64,000 nt of DNA from contig CM074804.1 of assembly GCA_037447605.1 (NCBI GenBank), forward strand, positions 8,161,909 through 8,225,908, given 5' to 3'. Made by a program: the position numbers and the translations under genes. Below, piece by piece: positions 7,302 through 60,996 of this stretch; the stretch's first letter is position 1; each line of letters starts with the position of its first letter. Under the pieces are notes generated by a model. The model did no database searches and had not been told where the DNA came from. It worked only from the letters and a program-made list of their open reading frames with translations. This stretch comes from Zygnema circumcarinatum SAG 698-1b. Its lineage: Eukaryota > Plantae > Zygnematophyceae.

Positions 7302-7453
7302 GCGGCGCATTTTGGGGCATACCGGACCGTCCGTTTTAGGGTTTTGGAAGGAGCTGCGGATTTTGGGTCAAATCAGATCGTCCGTTTCAGGGTTTTGGAA
7401 GGAGCGGCGTATTTTGGGTCAATCCGGACCGTCCGTTTTAGGGTTTTGAAGCA
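7302..7453 (+). repeat. Three ~51-bp tandem units, most carrying a telo-box-like TTTAGGGTTTT, just upstream of the NLR-like start codon
   Basis: Units start at 7302, 7353 and 7404 (gcggcg..ttttggg..cgtccgttt[t/c]agggttttg[g]aag). Confidence 0.85.
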
Positions 7454-7487
7454 GCAGCGGTGGTCGGAGGCGAGGGTTTATGCATCC

Positions 7488-10400
7488 ATGGTGGTTTTGC
7501 AGCCTGAGCCTGAACCCCACCTCCTCGACGCGCAGGAACCGCCTTCCAGCAGCGCCTCAACCTTCTCCGACCCCAGTCTCCTCAGCTCACGCTCTGTGAG
7601 CGTTGATTTAGACCATGCGCGCTCTCAGCCGTTGGATTCCGCATCCCCCCCGACAGATGGCGCGGATCCAACGGCCCAAGATGCTCCTCCTCCCCTGCAG
7701 GTGAAGGAGAAGGCCGTCTCCTTCAGCCGCCATGTGGTGGTCCTGGACGACAAAATCCACCCAAAAAAGAAAAAAAATAAGAAGCTAAAGGCCATCGTGA
7801 AGCGCGCTCCCCGAAATTTAGCTGTAATGGAAGAGCATAGAAACCCTGAAGTGGAGAAGCTTCTGGCGAAGCTCCTGCAGGTCGCCACCTTCTGCCAATA
7901 TCACGCTGAACCCAAGGCGCTCAAGGAGAGGCCCGTCCTCTCGGAGCTCGTGAAGAAGGCGGCGTGGTGGAAGCTGGATTTCAGAGACTCTGAACGGATG
8001 AAGGAGAGCATGGAACGGGCGGTTCTGAGCTGCTTGGAGGAGTACTGCATGCCCGGGGAGGAGGTGCAATGGCTGGAGCTCATGGGGGTGGTGGAGCAGG
8101 TCAATGATATCGCAATGCAGCGCCTCGGGGAGGTAAGCGCTGAACCCTAAACCCGTTTTTTGGAACTTTAAGCTCTAAACCCTCAACATGAAATTTGACT
8201 CTGGGCCCGGATCCTTGCGGCTTTCTCTCCTCTTTATAGCTCAATCTCTCCTGCTCTCTCTTCTCCCCTCTTTCACCCCTCTCTGGCTCTTTCCATCTTC
8301 TCCTTTCTCTTCTCTCATTCTCCCTACACTGTTTTGTCTTTCTCCCTTTGCCTGTGTCGCTCACTTCCACTGCCTCCTATCCTGTCCTGACCTCTTCCAC
8401 TTCTTGTACATTCCCCATTGCTCTCTTATCCCCCATCCATTCGTCCAGAGTGCCTTCATCTCTTTTCCTAGTCTCTGACTCTTCCTCCTTCCTTCTTTAC
8501 TCACCTTCTCATCGCCCTGCCACTCTCCCGCCCTTCCTCGCTTCCCCTCTCCTTCTCCCTCTCCCCCCCCATACCATTCACCTCCTCCCCCTTGAACCCC
8601 CGACAATCGTTTGAACTCTGATTGCAATCCCTTTATCCTGAACCTCCCCTTACACCCTGAACCCCCTCTCTCTCTAAACACTCCTATCCAAACCCTAATC
8701 CCCCCCCTCCCCCCCCTCCCCTCGTTACCTTTACCTGCAGTGGCGAGTCTGCGGAGTGGCCCACGAGTTTGCGAGATCCGCCTTCATGCGCGGCTCCACT
8801 GCTCATGAGAGGCACGTTTTCAAGAAGCCTCTAAAGGCGCTGCTGCGTCTAATGGAGCCTCTGAAGAAGCTGGAGGCGAAGGTGGAGGCGAAAGTGAAGC
8901 TCTCGCGGGAGGAGAGGAAGCTCAAAAGGAGATTGGCTGAGCAAGTCTGTGAGGTGGGGAAGTAGGCATCCCAGAGTGGGTTAAGAAGCTATTGGAATTA
9001 CCAATTGTGTTGTGTTGTGTGGTCGTATTGTATTTTGGTATGGTAATGTATGGTATCCTATGGCACAGTATTAGAATTAAGTAGTCTTATAGTCGTACTG
9101 TATTGCAGAGCACCTGTTTTTTATGTTCTCTGAAGCCTAAGTCCCATTGGTAGGGCTTGAGTGCAGGTGGGTCTGTTCATCGGTTCGATCCGAAGGTCAG
9201 GCCAAGTAGTGACAGTCCTCCGAGCCACCGGAATGGAGGAATGTTTGGTGCAATTCGAGTACGAACTGAACAAAACATTGTTTGAATTGTACAACGATGG
9301 GATCCTCCTAAGCTTGAGTACTGAACATGTTCATCCCACGAGTCGCCCTTGGACCGTTCCCTACCCCCAAAACCACCTCTATCACGGACAAAACGAGCTT
9401 TTAGGAGAGATTTTTCGGTTCCTTCACTCGCAAGGAGACTGCGATTCCGTTGTACTTCCTCACTCTTCAAATCTTTCCAAGGAGTCAGTGAAGGGGCACC
9501 ATCGCTCGAGTTCTTCGGAGTCTGTGGAGTCGATTTCTATGACTACTGTAAACATGGCTCAGGTGAAGGGAAAGGGACTCTCAAAGAGGAAGGGAGGGAG
9601 GAAGGGTTTTTTTGTGATGAAGATGTGACTATCGAAACTAATGTCAAACATGCATAGGCCTGAACCCTGACGCCTAAAGCCTCAAATGCTAGAACCACTA
9701 TAGCCTCTACATCTTCAACCTCTACATATCCTAAAAGCTATAACAACGATATAAGAAATGCAGAAAGTCCCATAATGCTTAAGTTTCCGTAGGAGCTCTG
9801 AACTTCAGAACCTCAACATAACAAACCCATAACCCCAAACTACACAGAACCCTCAAAACCCAAAACCTTCCAATCTCCCATACCTCCTCCGCCAGACCCC
9901 ACGAACCCTAATACTACAAAACCCATAATCTCACCACCCTAACACCCTAAAAGCCCACCTAAAAACTCCAATCCCCAATCTGCCATACCTCCTCCCCCAA
10001 ACCCCACGAACCCTAATACCCCAAAACCCATAATCTCACCACCATAACACCCTAAAAAACCCACCTAAAAACCCATCTTTAAATCAAAATGCAATCCTGG
10101 GTGGGCCAGTCAGGAGCTCTGCTCCTTTGGGGTTTCAACGGCATGGGAAAATCCTCCATTGTTTTGGAATACGCTTACCGGAACGCGCTCGAGTACGATG
10201 GGGTGCTGTGGGTCGACTGCGACCCCTCGGCGGAAGAGGAGTTTGCAAACCTAGCAGACGCGCTTGATCTCGACGTGAAGATCTAAACCAAGACAAAAAC
10301 CCTGAAACATAAAATCTAAACCCGAGAGTTTGAAAGGTGTAGGTCAAGTCGTACGTAGAAAAAGAGAGGAAGAGGGAAGGGAAAAGGAAAGGCAAGTAGA

Positions 10401-13400
10401 GGAAAGTAAAAATAAGAAAAGTAGACGAAGAGGGAAGGTTAGAACCTTAAAAGGAATGAGAGGCAAAGGAAGTCTTTTTAGGTGTTCAGGACTGTGAGAG
10501 TTGGAAGGGTAAGAAGGCGATGGGAGCTCGACCTTCTGTTTGTGTGTGCATGCAGGTCGAGGATGACGAGGATCTGGACAAACGTGTTGACCAGGTTCGG
10601 AGACACCTGGAGGGCGGGTCCAAGTACCTGCTGGTGTTGGACGATGTGGTAAACGTCCACGACTTGGAGGCGATTTGGCCAAAGGTAGGCACCTCAACTT
10701 TCTCCTCCCCTCTCTCTCTCTTCGTTTCTGTCACTCTCTCCCTCCTCTCAGCTCGGACCCCTTTCTGCTGCTGTCCCTTGCTTCCTTCTCCCACGCTCCC
10801 CTACCTCTCCCTCTCTTCAGGCATTCTCTCGACCTATCCCTCTCTCGTGTCTGTCGTTTTCACTGTTCCTCGTCTCTCCTCCACTCTGTCTCTCTCCCTT
10901 CATCTCCTCACTATCTTGCCCTTCGTCCCCCCCTCTCTCCCTCTCTCCCCCTCTCCCCTCACCCCCCCACTCCCCCACTCCCCCTCTCCCCTACTCCCCG
11001 TCTCCGCCTCTCCCCCCCTCTCCATCTCTCCCCCTCTCCCCTCACCCCCCCACTCCCCCACTCCCCCACTCCCCCTCTCCCCTACTCCCCGTCTCCGCCT
11101 CTCCCCCCCCACCCCCATCTCCCTCTCCTCTCCCTCTCCCTCTCCTCTCCCTCTCCCTCTCCCTCTCCCTCTCCCTCTCCCTCTCTCCCCTCTCCTCTCC
11201 TCTCCCTCTCCCTCTCCCTCTCCCTCTCCCTCTCCCTCTCCCTCTCTCCTCTCCCTCTCCCTCTCCCTCTCCCTCTCCTCTCCCTCTCCTCTCCCTCTCC
11301 CTCCTCCTCCCTCTCCCTCTCCCTCTCCCTCTCCTCCTCCCTCTCCCTCTCCCTCTCCCTCTCCCTCTCCTCTCCCTCTCCCCTCTCCACTCTCCTCTCC
11401 CTCCCTCTCCCTCTCTCCTCTCCCTCCTCCCTCCTCCCTCTCTCTCCTCTCCCTCTCCTCTCTCCTCTCCCTCTCCCTCTCCTCTCCCTCTCCCTCTCCT
11501 CTCCCTCTCCTCTCCCTCTCCCTCTCCCTCTCCCTCTCCCTCTCCACTCTCCTCTCCCTCTCTCCCCTCTCCTCCCTCTCCCTCTCCCTCTCCCTCTCCC
11601 TCTCCTCTCCCTCTCCCTCTCCCTCTCCCTCTCCCTCTCCTCTCCCTCTCCCTCTCCCTCTCCCTCTCCCTCCTCCCTCTCCCTCTCCCTCCTCCCTCTC
11701 CCTCTCCCTCTCCCTCTCCCTCTCCTCTCCCTCTCCCTCTCCCTCTCCCTCTCCTCTCCCTCTCCCTCTCCCCTCTCCTCTCCCTCTCCCTCTCCCTCCT
11801 CTCCCTCTCCCTCCCTCTCCCTCTCCCTCTCCTCTCCCTCTCCCTCTCCCTCTCCCTCTCCCTCTCCCTCTCTCTCCCCCTCTCCCCTCACCCCCCACTC
11901 CCCACTCCCCCTCTCCCCCTCTCCCCTCACCCCCCCACTCCCCACTCCCCCTCTCCCTCTCCCTCTCCCTCTCCCTCTCCCTCTCCCTCTCCCTCTCCCT
12001 CTCCCTCTCCCTCTCCCTCTCCCTCCCTCTCCCTCTTCCCTCTCCCTCTCCCTCTCCCTCTCCCTCCCCCTCCCCCCAATGCGTGAGTGTGGCTCCAGAG
12101 CAGGCCGGGCAGTCGCACGTGCTGCTCACCTCCACGGAGGCGGTGGACTTCATCCCCTCCATGAAGATCAGCCAACTCCCGCACGACGAGGCCATCAAGG
12201 TACCCCTGCCTGCGCCTAAACCCTAAACCCTAAACCCTAAACCCTAAACCCTAAACCCTAAACCCTAAACCCTAAACCCTAAACCCTAAACCCTAAACCC
12301 TAAACCCTAAACCCTAAACCCTAAACCCTAAACCCTAAACCCTAAACCCTAAACCCTAAACCCGAACCCCTAAACCCTAAACTTCCCCCCTAAACTCTAA
12401 CCCTATTCCTAAACCCTAACCCTAACCCTAAACCCTAAACCCTAAACCCTAAACCCTGGCTGCAGCTCCTGGACCTGGACCGGCTCCGGTCGCTGCCCGC
12501 GGGCGAGCTCGAGGCGGTGGAGGAGATAGCGCGCGAGCTCGACGTGCTGCCCATGGCGCTGGTCATCGCGGGAAATGTTTTGGAGCTCGGGCAGCCTGCC
12601 CGGACGCTGCTCAAGAAGCTGGGCAAGGGGATGGAGGGCAGCAAAGAAAATAATAACAATATGGAAAAGAAAAAAGTTCGGCTGAAAAAGTCGCAGCCGC
12701 TGCCCGTGGAGACGATGATCAAAGACGAGCGCTTTTCGAGGCCTTCAACGTGAGGAGTGGTTTTGGGTTTGAAATTTTTTAGGGTTTAGGGTTTGGGTTT
12801 TAGGCTTATGTTAGGATGTAAGGGCATTCATAGCTCTTCCTCTTCTAAGTTTTTTTTTTTTTTTGCGGGCAGGTTGAAAAACCTTTTCAACGAAATCCTT
12901 GAAAGCATTGTGGGGAGAGGGGCAATGTTCGAAGTCGCATCCCACTTCGCGCACGGCGAGCTCGCCATCGCCCTATTGGAGGCCGCCGGGTGGTTCGGGC
13001 CGCAGGAAATTCCTTTCAGACTGCTCGCAATTGCTGCCCGGAAAATCCGGTCAGTAAAAAAATCTTGAGAAGGGGGAAAGAAGAAGGTTGTTTCATTCAG
13101 ATTGCTCGCCATTGCTGTCCGGAAAATCTGGTCAGTAAAAAAAAGCTTGAGATGGGGGAAAGAAGGAGGTTGTTCCGTTCAGATTGCTCGCCATTGCTGC
13201 CCGGAAAATCCGGTCAGTAAAAAAAGTTTGAGAAGGGGGAAAGGAGGAGGTTGAAGGACAGTTTTTTCGGGCCTGTTGTGTCATTTGGAAGTCGCAGCGA
13301 AAAGGCCTTTTATAAGCTTCTAGGGTGTTATTTAATTGTGTTTTTCAGCAGTTTTTTTGGGTTTGGGAGGTGAAATAGTAAGGTTTTGGCTGGGATTTCC

Positions 13401-16400
13401 CCACGGTTCAAAAATTGAAATTTTCTTCAAATAATCCTCGAACCCTAACCCTTTCAACTCTACTCTCTAAACCCCACACTTTCAAACCTTACTTTCTGAA
13501 CCCTAGCTCTTGCAACCCTAATTTCTGAGACCCCCACCTTACTTACAGCCCTACTTTCTGAAACCCTAAACTGCTGCCATCCCTTCCTTTATTCATTTAC
13601 TTTCTCTTTCAGACCGGTGAAGGCGAAAACTGGTGCTGTGGGTCAAGTCATGAGTCAGATTTGGGAAGATGCGACGGATTTTCTTCAGGGGAGAAACTCA
13701 CTAGATGATGATGAAGATCAGGGAACAGATGACGATATTGTTCTCTCCATTACCAAATTAGATAAGCTTGGACTCGCCACACAGAACGAGACCACAAAAG
13801 GGATTATTTTCCATAGACTGGTTCAAGAATACGCCCGATCTCGCCCCAACTCTGTCAAAGCAGCGAAAGCAGTCCTAGAAACCCTAGTTTTTGCGAGATG
13901 TTTCCGGGAAACTTCCGACCATTTCCACTCTGTTTGGGCCAGAAGGAAGTGGTTGGAATCTCAGAACTTTCCCTGTAACGAAATTTTCATAGTGGGGCTG
14001 AGACTGGCGGACTATTGGGGTGACCTGAATGAGAGAAGGCAGGTGTTGGCCATATGCGAGGAGGGGTTGCGGAGAGGGAAAGATTTGGGTTCTTTGAAGT
14101 TCAATTTTTGGCAGCTGAAATGTGAAGTGATAGCGGAATCGAAGGAGGGACCTCGAGAGGCCATTCAGGAACTGCTCAGATGTCAGAGGCAAATGTCAAA
14201 GGAAAGTTTGGGAACTCCATTGGGGCTGCTCATAGAAACGCAGATTCTGTACCATTCCGTTACATCGGAGAACAAGTCTCTGGTCGACGTCAAGGAACAC
14301 TTTGCGAAGCTGGAGAAGAAGGCAGAGGAGCTGTTGGGAAAGATGGGAGGAGGAGGAGCAGGAGGAGGAGGGGGGGTGGGAGAGGGAGAGGGAGAGGAGG
14401 TTCTGAAGGTTTTCAAAGAGTACGCGGCAGATGGGGAGGCCGTAACGCTCGCTACCGCCATAGAAACGCTTAGTGTTCTGCAGTTACAGAACGAAACTGG
14501 CACGGAACGGGCCCTTCGCCTGCTGAGACAGTCATCACAGCTGCTCCAACAGACTGGGGGGTCGGGTCACATGATGAGAGTTAATAAGAAATTAGGGAAG
14601 GTGTTTTCCAAACTGCTCCTGCAGGCATGCGAGCAGCAGATGTTCCATGAAGCATTTTTTAGCATTGTAGAGGGGGGGTTGCCCACAGACCTGCTGGGAG
14701 GAGGAGGAGGAGAGGGGGGAGGAGGGAAGCAGCAGGATGAGTTTTTTGGGGTGCCAACAGGGTTCAAGGCCAAGTTTTTGGAGGTGTCGAAAATTATGAA
14801 GGAGGCGGAGGAGGAGAGCGAGAGTAGTAGTGAGACAGAGTCGAGTTCTGAGGAAGAGAGTGAGGAGGAGATAGAGAAGGAGGCAGAGGGGGAGGAGACA
14901 GAGGAGGAGACAGAGGAGGAGGAGGAGGAGGAGGAGGAGGAGGAGGGAGGAGAGGAAGTGGAGGGAGAGGAACACGGGGAGAAAGGAGTATGGAGCTCGA
15001 CAAATGGGGATGCTGTAAGTTTGAATGGAGAAGCGGGAGAGGAGGGAAAGGAGAGAAACAGAGAGGAGGCTGAAGAGGAGAAGACGAAGTTGACGGAGGA
15101 AGAGATCCATGCAGCAGTAGAGAAGTACTTGGGAGGGTGGAGAGTGGAGAATGGAAAAATCATTTGGGGAAAGCCGGAGGGGCGGAACGGGAGGGAAGAG
15201 AGAGAGGGGGAGGAGAGAAAAGGAGAAGAGAGACAGTGGGACGAGGGAAGCGAATTTGACAGAGAAAGAGAAGAGAGTGTGAGAGAGGAGAGTGGGTCAC
15301 GAGCGGAGGCTGGGGAAGGGGGAGAGATGAGGGAAGCCATAGATGAGAAAAAGGAGGACGAGGAAATGAGACCTGGAAATGAGAAGGGGCCTTTAAAGGG
15401 ACACGGCGCCAAATCCTTTGTGCGTTCACGTTCAATTCCTGGTTCACGAAAAGCCTTGAAACATGCTAAGAAGCTGCAGAAAAAAGAAGAGAAAATGCGG
15501 AAAATGAGCTTTGCAGTGGAGGAAAAGCGGCGCATATATGCGGAAATCATACAAAATGTATGGCCGAAAAGTGGGAGAGTTTTGGGAGACGTCCATTTCT
15601 CAAAGGAGGAGCGAGTGGAAGCTTCCAAAGTCTTCTCTACCGTCCTGAGCAATATGAGAAACCCACATGGAGTCGGGGGCTCCTGTACTCTCGTACTGCT
15701 CCGTTTAACGGAACGGATTGACGGAGTAGAAGGCCAAAAGCTTCTAGAAATAGCAAAAGACAAGCTGGAAGAAGCTCTGGGAGAGGAGGTGGAGAGAGAA
15801 GGGACTCATATAATGAGCAGAGAGTGGGAAGCTTTCATCTTTCTCTCTCTCATTTACGACAAACTCGGAGCCCTCGATGCTGCCCAGACCACTTTTGAGA
15901 AAGCTCTCCCCTTCTTCGAGTTGAACCCTACCATTCTCCCTCACTGCCTCTCCTTCTTCTCCTACATTCTCATCAAGAGAGGGGACTTCGTCTCAGCAAG
16001 ACTAAACCTTCACAAGGCCCTCTCTCTCCTCAAATCTCTCAAGGTGAAGAAATTTGGACTCATGATGGTGGTAGCTAGCCAGCTGGCAATTGTTGAGTGG
16101 TTGGAGGGCTGCCCTGCAGCCGCCCAGGGATACCTGCAGGACTGCTGCCAGCTGGCAGCAAAAGCCCTAAACCCTGAGCATCACCTAATGGCGGATTATT
16201 TGAGCGCTATCGGGAGGGTTCAGCTGTCTCGGGTGAGGTCTAAACCCTAAAAAATTCGAAACCCTCAGACCCTCCTGTCACCAATCCTGGAAACTCTAAG
16301 AAGAAGCCCTAAGTTGGGTTCCCTTCTCCCTTCTCCCTTTCCCTTCTCCCTTCTCCCGTCTCCCTTCTCCCTTCCATCTCCCTTCGCCCTTCCATCTCCC

Positions 16401-16932
16401 TTCTCCCTTCTCGTTTCTCCCTTCTCCTAACGCTAACCACCTTTACCCACTTTCCCTCCCTCTCCCTGCAATTGGAATCTCCAAATGAGAGGGCCATTGG
16501 GGAGTTTGACTTTAACCCACCCTACTATTGTGCCCCCATATTTTGCGTTTTCCTTGTCAGGATCACGACACGGAGGCTGCGTACTTGTCTTTCCGTCACG
16601 CATTACGGATCCGTGAAAAGCAGCTCGACTCGGACGACCCCGCTTTGGCATGTGCCCTTGCGAACGTTGCCCTCACTCTCGATAAGATAGACAAGGACAG
16701 CTCCATCCTCCACCTCAGAAGGCACAGAATGGCTTATCAGCACTTGAAGAGTGCTAGTGAGAGGGCGAAGCTGGCGGAGTTGGTCTCTGCGCAGGCAGTG
16801 GCGATGTGGGGGAGGAGGAGGGAGCTGCAGGAGGAGTCGAGAGGTCTCAAGGAGAGGGCGCTCGCCATCATCAGTGAGAATGGGGAGCTGGAGGAGCTCA
16901 AGGTTCTCAAGAGGAGGCTGCTCAGGAGAACG
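7488..16932 (+). CDS. NLR-like STAND protein: helical N-terminal domain + NB-ARC + TPR repeats with an acidic insert
   Basis: Phase-consistent exons: 7488-8132, 8741-8953, 9167-9562, ~10110-10274, 10556-10684, 12104-12199, 12466-12749, 12873-13049, 13613-16232, 16561-16932; terminal exon uncertain (possibly 17261-17266). Motifs: [18 protein letters not shown] (pre-P-loop), GFNGMGKS (P-loop), [26 protein letters not shown] (Walker B), [17 protein letters not shown] (GLPL-like), [10 protein letters not shown] (MHD-like), TPR-type [13 protein letters not shown] and [23 protein letters not shown]. Confidence 0.85.
10930..12077. repeat. ~1.15 kb (CCCTCT)n polypyrimidine tract in NLR-like intron 5
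   Basis: Almost pure C/T hexamer repeat lying between the Walker B exon and the RNBS-B exon. Confidence 0.95.
12215..12457. repeat. Interstitial plant-type telomeric array (CCCTAAA)n in NLR-like intron 6
   Basis: About 20 perfect CCCTAAA units followed by degenerate ones, filling most of the intron. Confidence 0.95.
13015..13253 (+). repeat. Three ~81-bp tandem copies spanning an exon/intron junction of the NLR-like gene
   Basis: Copies start at 13015, 13096 and 13178, each ttcag-[a]ytgctcgc...ggaaaatcyg-gtcagtaaaaaa...gggggaaag. Confidence 0.9.
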
Positions 16933-18000
16933 GTGAGTTCTCCTCTCTCTCTCCCTCTCCCTCTCTCGTCCCTCTCCCTCTCTGTCCCCCTCTCACACTC
17001 TCTCCCTCACTTTCTCGCGCGTTCTCTCCTTTCATGGTCCTTAGTTTAACATGAATGGTGTTCTTCTGGGGGGATGGGTGCTGCATGCAGCACCTCACAG
17101 AGGCGGACTTGAACGGAGGCAGATAATGTGGCGGTGGAGATTTCCATGTGAGAACACCGTCAGTTAGGGTTTGCAGACCAGCCTTTAGGTGAAATGTGTG
17201 TCTGAGCTTCGCCAATGTGGTACTTCCACTGCATGCTTAGGCCTTGACCTTATATCCTAGGACTGACTTAGAGAGAGTGGGGAGGGGGGAGAGTGTGGGG
17301 AGAGAGTGGAGGCGGGAGGGAGGGAGAGAAAGGAAGGGGGAGAGAGTACAGAGAGAGGGGAAGAGTGGAGAGAGAGAGCTCCCTCTCTCTTTTCACCCTC
17401 CACCCTCCCTACAGCTATAAGAAGAATATGCAGAATGATACACAACATTTTACTTCTGGCTTCCTGTTATCGTATTATACATAGAACTGATTTACTGGAT
17501 AGTATATTTAGGGAAGCTCGGTTTGCTGTAGACTAGAAAGCAGGGTTTCGGGTGTTAGAGCTTCTAGAGTTCAAGGCCCCCTGGCGGGTAAAGCTATTCG
17601 TTTTCCTCATTTTTTGTTTTGTTTTTTCATTGTTATTCAACAGCGACGAGGTCTGGTGTATTTTTTAGGATTTGTTCTGTCTCTCACTTTGAGCAATAGC
17701 AAAATTCAAACTTAAGCAATAGAAGCGACGACAATCTCCCAAACTCAATTTGAAGTTTTTCCTTTCCGTTCCCTTCTGTTATCGTTTCTTTCATCTCCGT
17801 TTCTCTTTTCGTAGTGATGCACTAAGTTGACCGACCTGACAAGATAACATCATCCCTATTCCAACGTCGTCTACTCTTCCTGTATTTTGGCTCTTTCCCT
17901 GGTAAGCGCCTCACTCTCTCATGGAGTGATGAGGTGAGGTCAGCTGTCGCTTTCCCTCTCTCTCTCTCTCACACACACGCACACACACGCGGAGAGCTCT

Positions 18001-19517: not shown

Positions 19518-21592
19518 GGAAATAGGGAAGGAGGGGAAGACACCTGCTGTTGCCACAAGCGAGCAGAGAGACTCTTGAGGTGCTGCTTGAGCCCAACTAA
19601 AGTGGTAAACCAGCTGNNNNNNNNNNCCCCCCCCCCCCCCCCCCCCCCGCCCCAAAATCTCCCCAAAAGGCATTAGAAAATTTACACAGAAGAATTCCTC
19701 CAATTTAATCTCCCCCTCTTCCCCTCTACCACACACTTGACCCACTGAAACCCTCCTCCAAGTAAGGTCTGAGCCTCACTGTATGCGGTCCCGTAGAACG
19801 GAACTGTCATCGATAATGCGATCTATGAAGGCTTTCTCTCCCCCCGGATACGCCATTTCCGCAGAGGTTCCGCCACAAGCTGAATTAGGGTTCGCTCCTG
19901 CCTCCTCCATGCTCTCAAAAAAGGGAGGATTGCACATGCACATGTCAAAAACTTCATCGTCTCTCACTACTCCAACAAGAACAGCTGCTTGAGCTGTACC
20001 CTCCTCTCTCCTCCCACCTGCTCCCTCTCCCTCTCTATCATCAGGAGATGAGTGCGGTCCGCCATGGACTTCCTCTTTCACCTCTCTCTCTCCCCTCTCT
20101 CTCTCCGTCTCTCCCTCTCTCCGGCTCTCCTCGCTACTACAGTGCCCTGCTCTTCGTAGCTGGATGAAAGGAGAGAGGTGTGGGTTCCGATTCAGATTCG
20201 CTGCAGCTCCATCCATGGCGGCTTCCGTTACGTCTGCAAGAAAAGGAACAAACTTTAAATACCCTACAGGACTGCTGTCATAAGAGGTAAAAGAAAAGAA
20301 TGAAAAAAAAGCACAAACGAAACAAAACACAAAACACAAAAAACACAAAAGAATGAGCGAGAGCTTGCGCATGCATGCAAGATGGCTTCCCAGAAAGACT
20401 TCTGTACCAATTTTCAGTTGACATGGAGAATTATACTTTCATATAAGAGCACAATACCTGTAGCTACAAAATGCCATCCGCAGATAGCAGCTCCGAGAAG
20501 GGAGTAAATACAGTTTGCTCCAGTTCCAATGTCGACCACATGCACCTCTTCTGTTGTTCCTCTACCCCTTCCCTCTCTCTTCCACGGAGGGGGAGAGAGA
20601 GAGAGCAGGTCCTGCAGCCAGTGGATATAGTTGGCTCTATTTGGAACAGCAGGACAAAGCTGCCCGTCTTCTATCCACCTGCATCCTGAAACCCTTCCTT
20701 TCTAAATCAAACCATGGATTATGTATATGTATATATATCCGATCGATTCATATGATGGAGAGGAGAAAACACCAAAGAGAAGACTTCATGTTTTGAGAAA
20801 CACAAATCACTTGCGAAACAAGCTTTACCAGTTAATGCCAAAGTCATGATGTAGCAATGTTTTAGTAAGCTCTCTTGTGGCATTATAATCTCTCCAATTT
20901 ATTCGAGAACGACCTCGGCCACCCCGTGGAGGTTGAACATAAGGACGAAAATTGGAATAGCTTTGTGCAAGTTTCTCAAAGTCCGGCTCCTCCTCTGCGT
21001 ACTTATTGCGAGGATGCATAGTTCTCCTTTCTTGTCTCGTCTCTCTCGTGCATTTCTTTAAGTCTCGAATTTCTCCATGATATATGTCTGAAAACCCTCC
21101 GGCTTCTCCAGCATCTGTGGAATCTTTCTCATCATATCTGCCTCGTTTCTTCCCTCCTTGGGCCTGTACTTCATTCACAGACTCTCTGCTCCCAAACTCA
21201 GTAAGAGAAACTTGCAGAGTCCCCTCCCTCTCCTTCTCCGACTGCTGAGTGTGATGCTTCTCTCTCCCACTATACCTCTCTGCATCTTCAGGAGCATGAT
21301 GCATCCCTTCACCGCTGTTCTCAATAGAGTCAACAGCAGTACTTTTTAGAAACTGCACGCTATTATCCCCCTCTTGAAAGTGGCAGTCACGGCTGATTGG
21401 AGAGGCATTGGAAAGAGTGGCAGGACTTTGTGCATGTTGAGCATTTTCTCCTTCGAGAAGGTCAGCAGAAATAAGGGGATTGTGCTGGCTGAGATCAGAG
21501 ACTTGGTTTGAAACAGGCTGGCGGTTTTGAAGGACCTCTTTGGTAAGGTCCAGCACCTCTCTCAAAGCCTGTTTCATCTGAAATGAAAACAC
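18001..21592 (-). CDS. METTL16: U6 snRNA/mRNA m6A methyltransferase METTL16/FIONA1 (RlmF family) with a long N-terminal extension
   Basis: Exons 21592-20829, 20678-20458, 20233-19780, 19613-19544, 19288-19151, ~18957-18850, further small exons ~18740-18200, last exon ending at TAG 18001. Motifs MHPRNKY (ATG 21019), LCPAVPNRANYIHW, DIGTGANCIY, MCNPPFF, GGEKAF, WFTTLVG, TEFVQGRTSRWGLAWS. True start unresolved. Confidence 0.93.
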
Positions 21593-22599: not shown

Positions 22600-24573
22600 A
22601 TGAAGTTTGCAGAAAAAGCAGTTCAGGAAAGCTCAGAGGCGCAGCATGAGGAGAAGACGTCTGGGAAGCGGAGAGAACGATTCTTGGCAGCCGTTTCTGG
22701 GAAAGCCCTGAGGGCAAAGCTTGCTGGGAAGGTGAATCGTTCTCTTTCTTCTTCAGAAATCAGTAAGCTCTCTCTCAGTTTTCCACACCGTATCAAACTG
22801 TACAGACATTCAAAAGCCAAATTCTGGAAGAAATTTCTTTCTTTTGGTGGAGATTATGGATGACTATTAAGGAAAGGATAAGCTCTTGCAAGCGCTGTCT
22901 TTTTATCTATTGAGGAATGCAGCCAGTTTTGAAAGTAAGCTGAGGAAATTGAAAGGCATGGACTAGCCATAGGCCATAGATTGGACTCAGATTTACAACC
23001 TCTGTCCATTGTTCTAATAATCATCTAGGTATTCAGAGTTATAAGAATCAGAAAATTTGGCACAAATAATCAGGCTGTACTCCACATTCAAGTCGATAGA
23101 AACATAGGAAAAGAAAAGCACCTGCTTTTTATTTCTTCCTTATTTTTGAGTCAGAATGACTTTGGATGAAAATGGGCATATGGATACCTACTGTTGTGAT
23201 GTTACGATGGAAGAACGCGTGTGTTTGCCTTTTCAAATTGCCAAATGTTTTAGAAATTGGAAAGAATCGAGTGTTTTATTGGATCGAATTGTTTACCTTC
23301 ATTCAAAATTATTGTCTAAGTACCATTAAAAAAGGGTTATGTATGTCGCTTGTTTGAGGAAGCCTTTCAAGAGTTTCTATCTGACAGAGCACAATGCTCG
23401 GAAGGGAACACCCCTTTTTCTCTTTCTTCTTTTTTCCCCCCTTTTTCTTTGTTTGTGTGTGTGCGGTTACCACCCGTAGGAAACCACCTGTGGGATGTTC
23501 TTCCCAGATCAAAAATTTGAAGTTTTTGCTTTCCTCCTCTGCCTGCAGGGAATCTGAGGACAGCCTATCAGAATGCGCGAAGCATCAAGAAGTATCGAAG
23601 GCTGGAGAAGAAACTTGGAGGGACTGGGAGGCCCTCTCTTCCTGGAGGTGCAGGGGCGAGGGAGGAAGAGGAGCAGGTCGAGCAGGTGAGTTCAAGCGGT
23701 CACTCACTGCTGCTCCATGTTCAGGATTGGAAGTGCATCAGGACTTTGCATATGAGGTTGCAAAGAGTGTGAGAGAAGAGTGGGAGGGAGGGGGAAAGGG
23801 AGGGAGAGAGAGGGAGAGATTGGGGAGAGATGGGGGGAGAGGGAGGGAGTTTCTTTCTCCTAGTGCTAATCGCTGGCTCTGTGGCGCTGCAGGCGGGCAG
23901 TAGGAATGCAGGGACTCTGCAGAGGCCTGAAGCTGCAGATAACAGAGCCGCAAGGAAGCAGTCTAAAGGGGCAGACTTATCCGAGAGTAGGGTCAGGTTT
24001 TTCAACGGGGAGAGGGAGGGAGGGAGAGGGAGAGGGAGGGAGGGAGGGGGCGAAGGGTCAGGTGAGGCCGAGCTCGATGGTTTGAAAGATAGTAGAAAGA
24101 GAAGGTATAAGGAATTCAAAGCGGACGATGAGGACAATGCAGGTGAGGAAGAGGAAAAGAGGGAGAGAGGGGGCCAAACGAAAGGAGAAGGTGCAGGCAA
24201 GAAGAAGAGGCACAGTCAGTTGGAGAAAGATGAGGAGGAGGAGCCTTTTTTGCAGAAAGAAGAAGCTGGTGGTCCGAGTGAGAGAGAGGAGATGGCGGTA
24301 GGAGGGAGAGGCCATCTCAATCGGAGGAAGAAACCGCTCTTGAGTCAGATGGCGAGACTGCAGCGAGAAGCGGAGCAGAAGAAAGCTGCAGAGAGGGCAG
24401 CGAGGGAGGCGAGGGAGGCTGAGATGGAGCAAAAGCGGAAGCAGAGAGAGGAGGCGGAAAAGAGGAGGAAGGGAGTGACTGCGAAGCTGAGGAAGGTGAC
24501 GAAGAGAGGGCAGCCTGTGATGAAGCACAGAATGGAGAAGCTGCTGGAAAGCATACAGAAGGTGGTCAAGTAG
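22600..24573 (+). CDS. FYV7/TAP26 (CCDC59)-like rRNA-processing protein
   Basis: Exons 22600-22762, 23549-23685, 23893-24573, with phases 1 and 0 matching. Contains AYQNARSIKKYRRLEKKL and the C-terminal family motif KVTKRGQPVMKHRMEKLLESIQK. Confidence 0.85.
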
Positions 24574-36883: not shown

Positions 36884-39800
36884 TCAGCCAACTTTCTGGA
36901 GAGGGGGAAGATGCAGTTCGCCGCAGCGAATAAGATCCGCGATTTCAACGGAAAATCTGAAACATAGAATTCCGAATGACAAAAGCAAGAGTTGAAGACT
37001 ATTTAAAAAAAAAGCTGCACAAAAGGGTGTGATGTTCTACCTATCAAACGTGTAGGGAGCAGCGAAAGGGAGGGATCAAAATTAGGTTTAGGGTGTTGGG
37101 TTTTAAGGTTTACGGTTTAGGGTTTCAACGTTTAGGGTTTAGAGGTTTAAGAGTTAGGGTTTAGGGTTTATATTTAGGGTTTAGGGCTTTAATATTTAGG
37201 GTGGGTTTTAAGATTTAGGGTTTAGGGTTTCAAGGTTTAGGGTTTTCGGGTTTTTCAGCCATATACCGGTGGAGGGGAAACCCCATAACGTTAAAATAAC
37301 ATCCTTCGATGCGTCTTACGAGGGTGCCACCTTTACCCTGATTTCAATAAGGAAAGGCATAACTGACTTATTTGTTAATCCAAATTAGAAAAAAAAAAAA
37401 AAAAAAAAAAAAACGAAATTAAGAAAAGCTCAAGAAATTTGACATTCAGCGACACTTCCGTACACGTGTCTGTCTGAAGAAGATTTTAGGGTTCCTGGAA
37501 GTTCCAAGACTCCAAGACTCCTTTTTAGGGTTTCGAAAGGCTGCTTTCAGAACCAAACGAAATTTCAGCATCCGGTCAGAGTTCAGGATTTTTAGGATCT
37601 TAGGGTTTCAGGAACCTTAGGGTTCGAACTTTTAGGGTTTTAGGTTTTGGGGATTCAGGGTTAAGGGTTTAAGCCCTACTTGGATGCCATAGGCCCCGGC
37701 CTTCCCCATTGGCTCCCCTGTTGCCACGTAGGCCGAAATTTCCTCGTTGTCCAGCTCCCCAAATTCAACCTGGCGAGAGCAGGAAGCCTAAAAGTCAAGA
37801 AATGACCGGCACGAATTTTTAGGGTTCAGGGTGCAGGGTTCAGATTTTAGGGTTCGAAGTTCATGCTTCAGGTGTTAGGGTTCAGGATTTTGAGTTCAAT
37901 GTTTAGGGTTCAGGATTTAGGGTTCAAGGTTTAGGGTTCAGGATTTAGAGTTCGCTTTTGTGAGGAAAGGGTGGCAGTTCACCGCTGTCTGTTCATAGAA
38001 CGAACGCAACTTCGGAGCCTCGGACGCGTCTGTAAAGGAAAAAAGGGGAAAACAAAAAAAAAACACCAAGTGTGAAGCATTGTTAGTTGCTGGACTTCAA
38101 AGCAAAGAAAAATCTCTGTAACCCTGTAAACTCTAAAACCCTGTAAGCCCTTTCCCTGCGCCCTGGAAACCCTAAAATTGGTAGGGTTCTACAAGGTTGT
38201 TGCTGCTCCCCTCCTCGCTGTGCTCCCTCCCCCTCTCGTCCCCTCCCTCACCCCTCCCTCTCTCTATCCCTCCCCACCTCCCCTCTCAAACTCGCTCCGT
38301 CTATAGTTACCACTATCTGCCACAAACCACGAGCCTTAATGCCAAGGAAAGGTATAACCCTAAAAAAGCTCAAAACCCTAAAAACCCCAAGCGAACCCTA
38401 AAGGGCCTGAAACCCTAAAGAAACCCAACACTATGCAACCCTAAACCCCCTGAAAGTCCTAACCCCTCAACCCTGAACCCTAAACCCTAACCCCTCAACC
38501 CTAAGCCCTCAACCCTGAACCCTAAACCCTAACCCCTCAACCCTAACCCCTCAACCCTCAACCCTAACCCCTCAACCCTGACCCCTCAACCCTGACCCCT
38601 CAACCCTGAACCCTAAGCCCTAACCCCTAAACCCTAACCCCTCCCTCAACCCTAACCTCTCAACCATAACCCCTAAACCCACCCCTGAACCCCCCCCTAA
38701 ACCCTAACCCCTCAACCCTAACCCCTCAACCCTCAACCCTAAACCCTAACCCCTAAACCCTAACCCCTAAACCCTAACCCCTCAACCCTGACCCCTCAAC
38801 CCTGAACCCTAAACCCTAACCCCTAAACCCTAACCCCTCCCTCAACCCTAACCTCTCAACCCTGAACCCTAAACCCTAACCCCTAAACCCTAACCCCTCC
38901 CTCAACCCTAACCTCTCAACCCTGAACCCTAAACCCTAAACCCTAAACCCTAACCCCTGAACGCGTGCACAGGCCTTTTGGCAGAGCGAGCGCCACTCCC
39001 GTGTACACAGTGTGCTTCCTCCCTGCGAGCCGCCGGCCAATCAGAGGGCGAGATCGCTCAGTCCGACCAATCAGAGCGCAGGGGCCAATGAGCCTCATCA
39101 TAACAACACCCTAAAATTCCGGAACCCTAAAAATCCGAAACCTTAAAAACCCTAAAAAATTGCGCACCACTGAGCGATCGGAGCATCCCAAAGGCGTCCT
39201 CTTCATCTCTCGGCTTCTCCAGAATTTTTCCCTGCAGCCCGTTTTTCTTTCTTTGCTTTATAGGTTGAAGAAGCGAGGGATGTTTGCTTTCCGAAGCTCA
39301 AGGAGAAGCAAAGGGAAGTATTAAAAAGATGATGGAGAAGTGAAGCAAGCAAGATTGACGAGTAGCAAAAAGGGTCCCCAAAATGTAAAATCTAATTAAA
39401 AAGGAAAAAAGGAAAAAAAAAAAAAATAGCAGCGCTGACCGAAATTTCGACGACCGTATCAGCTGCGATGATGAGCTTTGGAAAGTGTCATCCTGCAAGA
39501 ACTAAAAAGAATGAAATTGAAAATNNNNNNNNNNNNNNNNNNNNNNNNNNNNNNNNNNNNNNNNNNNNNNNNNNNNNNNNNNNNNNNNNNNNNNNNNNNN
39601 NNNNNNNNNNNNNNNNNNNNNNNNATTCATTCAAAAATGAATAAAAATACTGTGCAATATACATCTGCAAACTTGAAAGAAAACCCAAAACGCGGAGGCT
39701 CAGCTTCTTCCTGAACCCTCACTCTGAACCTTATTTCTAAACGGATCTGAAACCCTAATTTTGTTTTAATCTTGAACCCACCTAAACCCTAAGCCTTCAC

Positions 39801-58668: not shown

Positions 58669-60996
<2,328 letters not shown>

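Follow-up and report, generated by a model that had tools for sequence, protein, structure and literature searches.

Structure and expression of the gene

The stretch of DNA analysed here (the window) comprises 64,000 nucleotides of contig CM074804.1 of Zygnema circumcarinatum SAG 698-1b (GCA_037447605.1; positions 8,161,909 to 8,225,908). On its plus strand, at 7488-16932, lies one multi-exon gene whose product has a nucleotide-binding core of the NB-ARC type followed by TPRs. The gene is transcribed and spliced. Its core carries motifs typical of TIR-NB-ARC-TPR (TNP) proteins and is followed by a winged-helix/MHD region, a helical domain, an acidic insert and the TPRs; there is no TIR domain. 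Among the TIR proteins of land plants, TNPs show the highest conservation, and there is debate about where they came from. An initial annotation of the window had proposed that the gene represents a new architecture, in which a helical domain like those of RPW8 and MLKL precedes the NB-ARC core and the TPRs.

The gene was modelled with ten exons (Table 1), each of which translates without a stop codon. Every splice site has the GT..AG form and the reading phases are consistent. Read contigs were taken from runs X1-X3, one from each of three studies on this organism; the runs are labelled only as possible RNA. The GT..AG joints 8132/8741, 8953/9167, 9562/10110 and 10274/10556 were seen in these contigs, and a loose contig end at 10685 carries on into sequence at 12104 in X1, X2 and X3. 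Exon 1 is joined to exon 2 in contig 14 of X3, while contig 4 of X1 (2178 nt) joins exons 2-5 and has a further 1275 nt beyond them. Since splicing at canonical sites is found beside low-depth contigs that retain introns, the joints can only derive from RNA. The contigs link exons 1-5, so that a single transcript holds the P-loop exon together with the N-terminal ones. This bears out the exon chain first proposed for this part of the gene and rules out a separate transcript for exons 1-3. Further downstream, the junctions between exons 7 and 8, 8 and 9, and 9 and 10 are crossed, as modelled, by the alignment to a related protein from another species (P0001, see below).

Both ends of the model are less certain. 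M1 at 7488 is one candidate start. M114 at 7827 is another, with a stronger Kozak context (G at -3, G at +4). M1, for its part, is preceded and overlapped by an out-of-frame ATG at 7480, and the start codon is therefore uncertain. The in-frame codon signal of 7488-7826 is weak but present (0.11 vs -0.39 and -0.36 in the other two frames). At the 3' end, residues 1367-1492 of P0001 align with exon 10 and P0001 then continues for 10 residues. Because of this extension, and of a GT donor at 16933 directly after exon 10, the model probably lacks a short terminal exon. Comparison of all exons with the window by tblastn gave no paralogue.

Table 1. Exons of the NB-ARC-TPR gene and features of their translations (window coordinates)
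Feature	Position	Strand	Description
Exon 1	7488..8132	+	215 aa; residues 1-113 S/P/D-rich and probably disordered, with a polybasic end; four helices predicted at ~117-215
Exon 2	8741..8953	+	71 aa; helical segment, charged and strongly amphipathic; joints 8132/8741 and 8953/9167
Exon 3	9167..9562	+	132 aa; hydrophobic predicted-strand segment, linker, pre-P-loop helix, S-rich loop
Exon 4	10110..10274	+	55 aa; P-loop GFNGMGKS (10131-10154), RNBS-A-like LEYAYR...VLWV
Exon 5	10556..10684	+	43 aa; Walker B YLLVLDD (10625-10645); joint 10274/10556
Exon 6	12104..12199	+	32 aa; RNBS-B-like SHVLLTSTE (12113-12139), RNBS-C-like segment; read from sequence
Exon 7	12466..12749	+	94 codons + 2 nt; GLPL-like VLPMAL (12544-12561); colinear with P0001 21-100
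Exon 8	12873..13049	+	TNP-type GWF.P..IP..LLA.AA.KI motif (12985-13047), conserved in P0001 and P0002
Exon 9	13613..16232	+	873 codons; winged-helix region, MHD-like FHRLVQ (13809-13826), helical domain, insert, TPRs
Exon 9 subregions		+	Conserved helical domain up to 14672; E/G-rich insert 14673-15518; TPRs 15519-16232
Exon 10	16561..16932	+	124 aa; last TPRs and charged helical tail

The NB-ARC core and the TPRs

Family profiles were scanned exon by exon, which lowers the sensitivity of the search; the NB-ARC domain is spread over six exons. The bacterial NB-ARC plus TPR family NF040586 (FxSxx_TPR) of NCBIfam matched exons 4, 5, 7 and 8 colinearly, at profile positions 28-80 (E 1.1e-10), 83-125 (E 4e-3), 166-224 (E 0.06) and 244-269 (E 0.15), respectively. 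The P-loop of exon 4 has the Walker A form GxxxxGK[ST], and this exon also gave weak Pfam matches to AAA_16 and nSTAND6. Walker B of exon 5 has the form hhhhDD, and the exon matches positions 84-118 of the Pfam NB-ARC model (E 3e-4). GLPL-like and MHD-like motifs are present, and the winged-helix region of exon 9 shows a weak Pfam match to DUF7779. The TPRs were recognized in exon 9 by TPR_12 (35.6 bits vs a cut-off of 30.1) and in exon 10 by TPR_NPHP3 and TPR_12. The complete NB-ARC motif series with following TPRs that had been read from the sequence is thus present as far as the P-loop, Walker B, the GLPL-like and MHD-like motifs and the above-threshold TPR_12 match are concerned, but its RNBS-B element lacks the arginine.

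TNP-type motifs in the core

The XTNX/TNP motifs of Zhang et al. (2017; Table S5, PMC5662649) were matched to all exons without gaps and scored against 500 shuffles. Motif 9, published as RM[VL][LQ][VA][GS][GA]WFAP[AS][PA][IV][PS][VA]SLLA[LA]AA[HK]K[IL]PEK (Zhang et al., 2017, PMC5662649), matches exon 8 at 15 of the 26 available positions (p~0.002). Motif 1, which covers the P-loop and RNBS-A, matches exon 4 at 15/50 positions (p~0.006), and motif 18, from the MHD region, matches exon 9 at 10/19 (p~0.002). The three motifs occur in the correct order along the gene. Motifs 2, 7, 8, 10 and 20 are visible by eye but have no significance in the ungapped comparison. The GWFAP-type motif that had first suggested a relationship to TNPs therefore agrees with the published one, and motifs 1 and 18 join it.

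Outside the core the likeness ends. The TNP motifs that follow the NB-ARC domain (3, 6, 11, 13, 16, 19, 21, 22, 25 and 30) did not rise above shuffles, and since these C-terminal motifs are absent the gene is, as judged from its motifs, not a TNP orthologue. The TNP NB-ARC profile also matches actinobacterial and ascomycete NB-ARC-TPR proteins (Johanndrees et al., PMC9806590). The shared motifs may therefore mark the whole NB-ARC-TPR clade and not TNPs alone.

The N-terminal region

Some 360-420 residues precede the pre-P-loop helix and the P-loop, close to the ~370 first estimated. The statement that this region has no TIR motif also held: no exon matched Pfam TIR or TIR_2 even at E<=10, and the XTNX TIR motifs 4, 5, 12 and 17 scored no better than shuffles in any exon.

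An AlphaFold2 (AF2) model of exon 1, calculated from the single sequence, has a predicted local distance difference test (pLDDT) score of 50.8 and places helices at residues 120-139, 149-161, 168-186 and 192-214. With the start at 7488 the first helix begins near residue 117; if M114 is used, it lies at the N-terminus. Exon 3, modelled without an alignment (pLDDT 39.7), has strands at residues 2-21 and a helix only at 77-88, the pre-P-loop position. Both models are too poor for a comparison of folds. Exon 2 is strongly amphipathic, 26% of its 18-residue windows having a helical moment >=0.5 vs 5% in shuffles. Exons 2 and 3 had both been assigned an amphipathic helical pattern. The pattern is found in exon 2, but the helical-moment scan gave no amphipathic-helix windows in exon 3, for which strands are predicted at low confidence.

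Scanned singly, exons 1-3 gave no match in Pfam, NCBIfam, PADLOC or the PDB sequences. A phmmer search of 1.84e9 representative proteins with exon 1 returned 0 relatives at E<=1e-3, a search that could still miss a ~100-residue domain at ~30% identity. For exon 2 and for the helices of exon 1, feature searches of the ESM Atlas gave scores of 0.77-0.83, which is the chance range, and a metagenome scan with the exon 1 helices found no relatives. With no relatives detected in these searches, the putative output module is lineage-restricted at the level of sequence.

A relative from another species and the exon 9 insert

The protein P0001 (1502 aa) is the translation of a Trinity transcript in EukProt. 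It is colinear with exons 7 and 8, with both conserved parts of exon 9 and with exon 10, at 30-41% identity (tblastn); over the start of exon 9 a MAFFT alignment gives 42-43%. P0001 starts inside the NB-ARC domain. It is therefore 5'-truncated and uninformative on the N-terminus.

Between the helical domain that follows the NB-ARC core and the TPRs, exon 9 encodes an insert of 282 residues. It is E/G-rich (31% D+E), of low complexity and probably disordered. P0001 has an insert at the same place (residues ~505-1127, ~620 residues), which is also of low complexity but unrelated in sequence. In both proteins the insert divides the putative C-terminal sensor region; its position is thus conserved, its sequence is not. 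At 37-43% identity, P0001 retains the C-terminal half of the NB-ARC domain, the helical domain, the insert position and the TPRs, which speaks for selection acting on the chassis as a whole.

No further relatives were obtained. A word search with residues 1-330 of exon 9 gave no match, and one with residues 1-500 of P0001 for full-length kin (826-2628 aa) returned P0001 itself only. A metagenome scan with the alignment of exon 9 and P0001 found no relatives, nothing relevant came from PDB sequence searches in which exons 1, 3, 4, 7 and 9 and profile A1 served as queries, and a PADLOC scan had no match. The partner of P0001 in its 90% cluster (P0003) was dropped, as it is an unrelated bacterial peptide of 53 aa, grouped with P0001 through an artefact in the clustering of the collection. 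On metagenome contigs in ENA (L001-L006), the neighbours of the P0003 gene code for a DNA methylase and a restriction enzyme of the SinI type.

Interpretation and alternative explanations

We consider it likely that the gene encodes a ~1,700-residue switch protein of the signal transduction ATPases with numerous domains (STAND), similar to NLR receptors (nucleotide-binding, with leucine-rich repeats) and belonging to the NB-ARC-TPR clade, with its N-terminal region as the output module. By analogy with Apaf-1, plant NLRs, bacterial Avs and NB-ARC-TPR proteins, the TPRs and the helical C-terminal part would hold the ATPase in the ADP-bound, off state and would sense the ligand. Binding of the ligand would lead to nucleotide exchange and oligomerization, and oligomerization would cluster the output module, which would consist of a leader that is disordered and polybasic, a helical part of ~170 residues and a short segment rich in strands.

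Several points weigh against this assignment. No single exon attains the gathering score of the Pfam NB-ARC family (PF00931), and only exon 5 matches it, with 20.5 vs 23.5 bits. RNBS-B reads SHVLLTSTE and is without the usual sensor-1 arginine (TTR or TSR; TTR in TNPs), which may mean weak ATP hydrolysis or an atypical switch. By sequence comparison the putative output module has no matched fold family, the gene model is uncertain at its start codon (7488 or 7827) and its final exon, and an immune role is suggested by analogy only. The missing arginine could also be the mark of a decaying, non-functional member of an expanded family, which is transcribed but no longer acts as an ATPase switch. 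The long microsatellite and telomere-type arrays in the introns, the triplication of the 3' end of exon 8 with its donor, and the low complexity of the exon 9 insert would fit such decay. All ten exons are open, however, and splicing is precise in three studies. The P-loop and Walker B are preserved, as are the GLPL-like and MHD-like motifs, and a relative at ~40% identity has the same domains in the same order. We therefore regard decay as highly improbable.

What the N-terminal region does is a separate question. If its helices formed a four-helix bundle of the RPW8/MLKL/HeLo type that inserts into membranes after oligomerization, the protein would be a pore-forming, TNP-like receptor. Four helices are indeed predicted, at low confidence, at ~117-215 of exon 1, exon 2 is strongly amphipathic, and members of these families are often beyond recognition by sequence. 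A start at M114, with its strong Kozak context, would put the first helix at the N-terminus, as in known executioner bundles. Heads of this kind also have precedents: fungal NB-ARC-TPR NLRs often have HeLo, HELL or MLKL-like heads (PMC4986451; PMC10952240), and in Chara, NB-ARC proteins have coiled-coil (CC)-type heads that are lethal to Nicotiana cells (PMC11218826). Against this, exons 1-3 one by one matched no Pfam family (no RPW8, HeLo or MLKL-type model) and no PDB sequence, and their look-alikes in the language-model search were at chance level. Exon 3 has no amphipathic-helix windows and has predicted strands. The annotated start leaves ~115 disordered residues before the first helix, which is unlike ZAR1, RPW8, MLKL and HET-S. 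These two points weigh mildly against the bundle. Neither AF2 model (pLDDT 51 and 40) is good enough for its fold to be compared. The assignment of exons 2-3 to the RPW8/MLKL/HeLo type in the initial annotation is thus not upheld: there is no family or PDB-sequence match, and the helices begin only after a disordered, polybasic leader of ~115 residues. The positive evidence for such a bundle goes no further than helical, partly amphipathic character, and we think a pore-forming head unlikely.

Instead of lysing membranes, the region could serve in regulation or as an adaptor, for example by acting in the nucleus or by binding a protein or nucleic acid. The gene product would then be a STAND linked to signalling or transcription, like the bacterial regulators of the AfsR/MalT type, and not a death receptor. 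A polybasic stretch resembling a classical nuclear localization signal directly precedes the helices, although such a patch is equally able to bind acidic membrane lipids. The family scans, exon by exon, detected no DNA-binding family; a weak winged-helix match in Pfam (MCM4_WHD, E 0.0025, 18.3 vs 24.4 bits) is short and under the cut-off, and thus a lead only. The best NB-ARC profile belongs to a bacterial family for which no death-receptor role is known, and an insert of ~280 residues, acidic and disordered, is what one would typically expect in a scaffold or nuclear protein. We regard an adaptor role as a tentative and rather doubtful alternative to the switch protein with an output module described above.

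Comparison with known systems

A similar layout in land plants is that of the TNP/XTNX proteins (Arabidopsis TN17/TN21, ZmTNP-IIa), in which the NB-ARC domain is likewise followed by TPR-type repeats, and with which the algal protein has three NB-ARC motifs in common, in order. Unlike these proteins it has no TIR domain, lacks the C-terminal TNP motifs and has TST-E where their RNBS-B has TTR. It is also ~700 residues longer and contains the long disordered insert. TNPs were reported to be absent from green algae (Zhang et al., 2017, PMC5662649) and to have no orthologues in Klebsormidium or Chara (Johanndrees et al., 2022, PMC9806590); their origin was placed in algae by Chia et al. (2022/2024, PMC11218826).

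Fungal NB-ARC-TPR NLRs, with HeLo, HELL, Goodbye or MLKL-like heads, have the same layout of a non-TIR, probably helical head, NB-ARC and TPR, and those with HeLo-type heads are common in fungi (Dyrka et al., 2014, PMC4986451). The algal N-terminus, in contrast, has no sequence match to HeLo-type families, and its host is an alga of the green lineage. The bacterial NF040586 family (FxSxx-COOH system TPR protein) provides the best-scoring profile for the ATPase exons, colinear over positions 28-269. The algal scores are, however, far under the family cut-off of 300 bits, and the algal gene is intron-rich and encodes an extra N-terminus of ~420 residues and a disordered insert. The resemblance to the RPW8-type CC domains of ADR1/NRG1, the N-terminal domain of MLKL and fungal HeLo is limited to the predicted helical, partly amphipathic character; there is no family match, the putative bundle is not at the annotated N-terminus and the exon 3 part is predicted to be non-helical.

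TIR-less (NBARC)(TPR) proteins of hornworts and Sphagnum (Chia et al., 2024, PMC11218826) are from streptophytes and, like the Zygnema protein, have no annotated N-terminal domain, a comparison made by table entry only. The NLRtracker table of that study (Data Set S1) has 2-9 of them per genome in Anthoceros and 4-14 in Sphagnum, but none in either of its two algae; Chlorokybus has five (TIR)(NBARC)(TPR) proteins instead. NB-TPR genes in algae were described by Andolfo et al. (2019), and streptophyte algae have been reviewed as possessing NLR-like receptors with alternative C-terminal repeats and with TIR or CC/RPW8-like bundles (PMC10952240). To call the architecture new, as had been done at first, was thus an overstatement, given that TIR-less (NBARC)(TPR) proteins are tabulated in Anthoceros and Sphagnum and common in fungi, and that algal NLR-like receptors have been reviewed. 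Our literature search yielded no paper on a protein that combines an MLKL/RPW8-like domain with NB-ARC and TPR in a streptophyte alga.

Taken alone, the gene is one more member of a known receptor class. On a reading that we think improbable, what would set it apart is the coupling, in a streptophyte alga, of a TNP-type NB-ARC-TPR chassis to a lineage-restricted, undescribed output domain with a helical and a short strand-rich part, in place of TIR. If this is true, one N-terminal module has been exchanged for another, within the plant lineage, in an ancient receptor class. The gene, expressed in an alga, combines TNP-type NB-ARC motifs with an orphan N-terminus, which suggests that the NB-ARC-TPR chassis has interchangeable outputs in the plant lineage, as it does in fungi and bacteria, and makes the orphan N-terminus a new candidate signalling domain. 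In the strongest form of the improbable reading, where the output domain would be a divergent, membrane-attacking helical bundle, the protein would link the fungal HeLo-NB-ARC-TPR receptors to the RPW8/CC executioners of plants.

Genomic surroundings and repeats

Exons of a METTL16-type RNA methyltransferase (Methyltransf_10) lie at 19779-21592 on the minus strand, a gene for an rRNA_processing protein at 23830-24570 on the plus strand and one for an S26 signal peptidase at 60106-60996 on the minus strand. As these neighbours are housekeeping genes, the receptor gene is a stand-alone gene; the 64-kb window contains no immune-type gene cluster around it. Runs of N mark assembly gaps at 19617-19626 and 39525-39624 and at six more sites of 10 N each; none of them is within the gene.

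The transcribed 5' leader contains a 51-bp tandem repeat in three copies (7305-7460). Most of intron 5 is taken up by a 1.1-kb microsatellite of the CCCTCT type (10931-12076, ~195 copies), which yields long spurious open reading frames in several frames and on both strands. At 13010-13253 an 82-bp unit that holds the last ~40 nt of exon 8 and its GT donor is present in three tandem copies (89% matches). Through the triplication the donor and the end of the motif occur twice more in intron 8, where they are possible alternative donors. In intron 6 of this expressed gene, at 12215-12457, a telomere repeat of the plant type, (CCCTAAA)n, is present in ~35 copies, and shorter CCCTAAA-like runs are scattered in introns 3 and 8.

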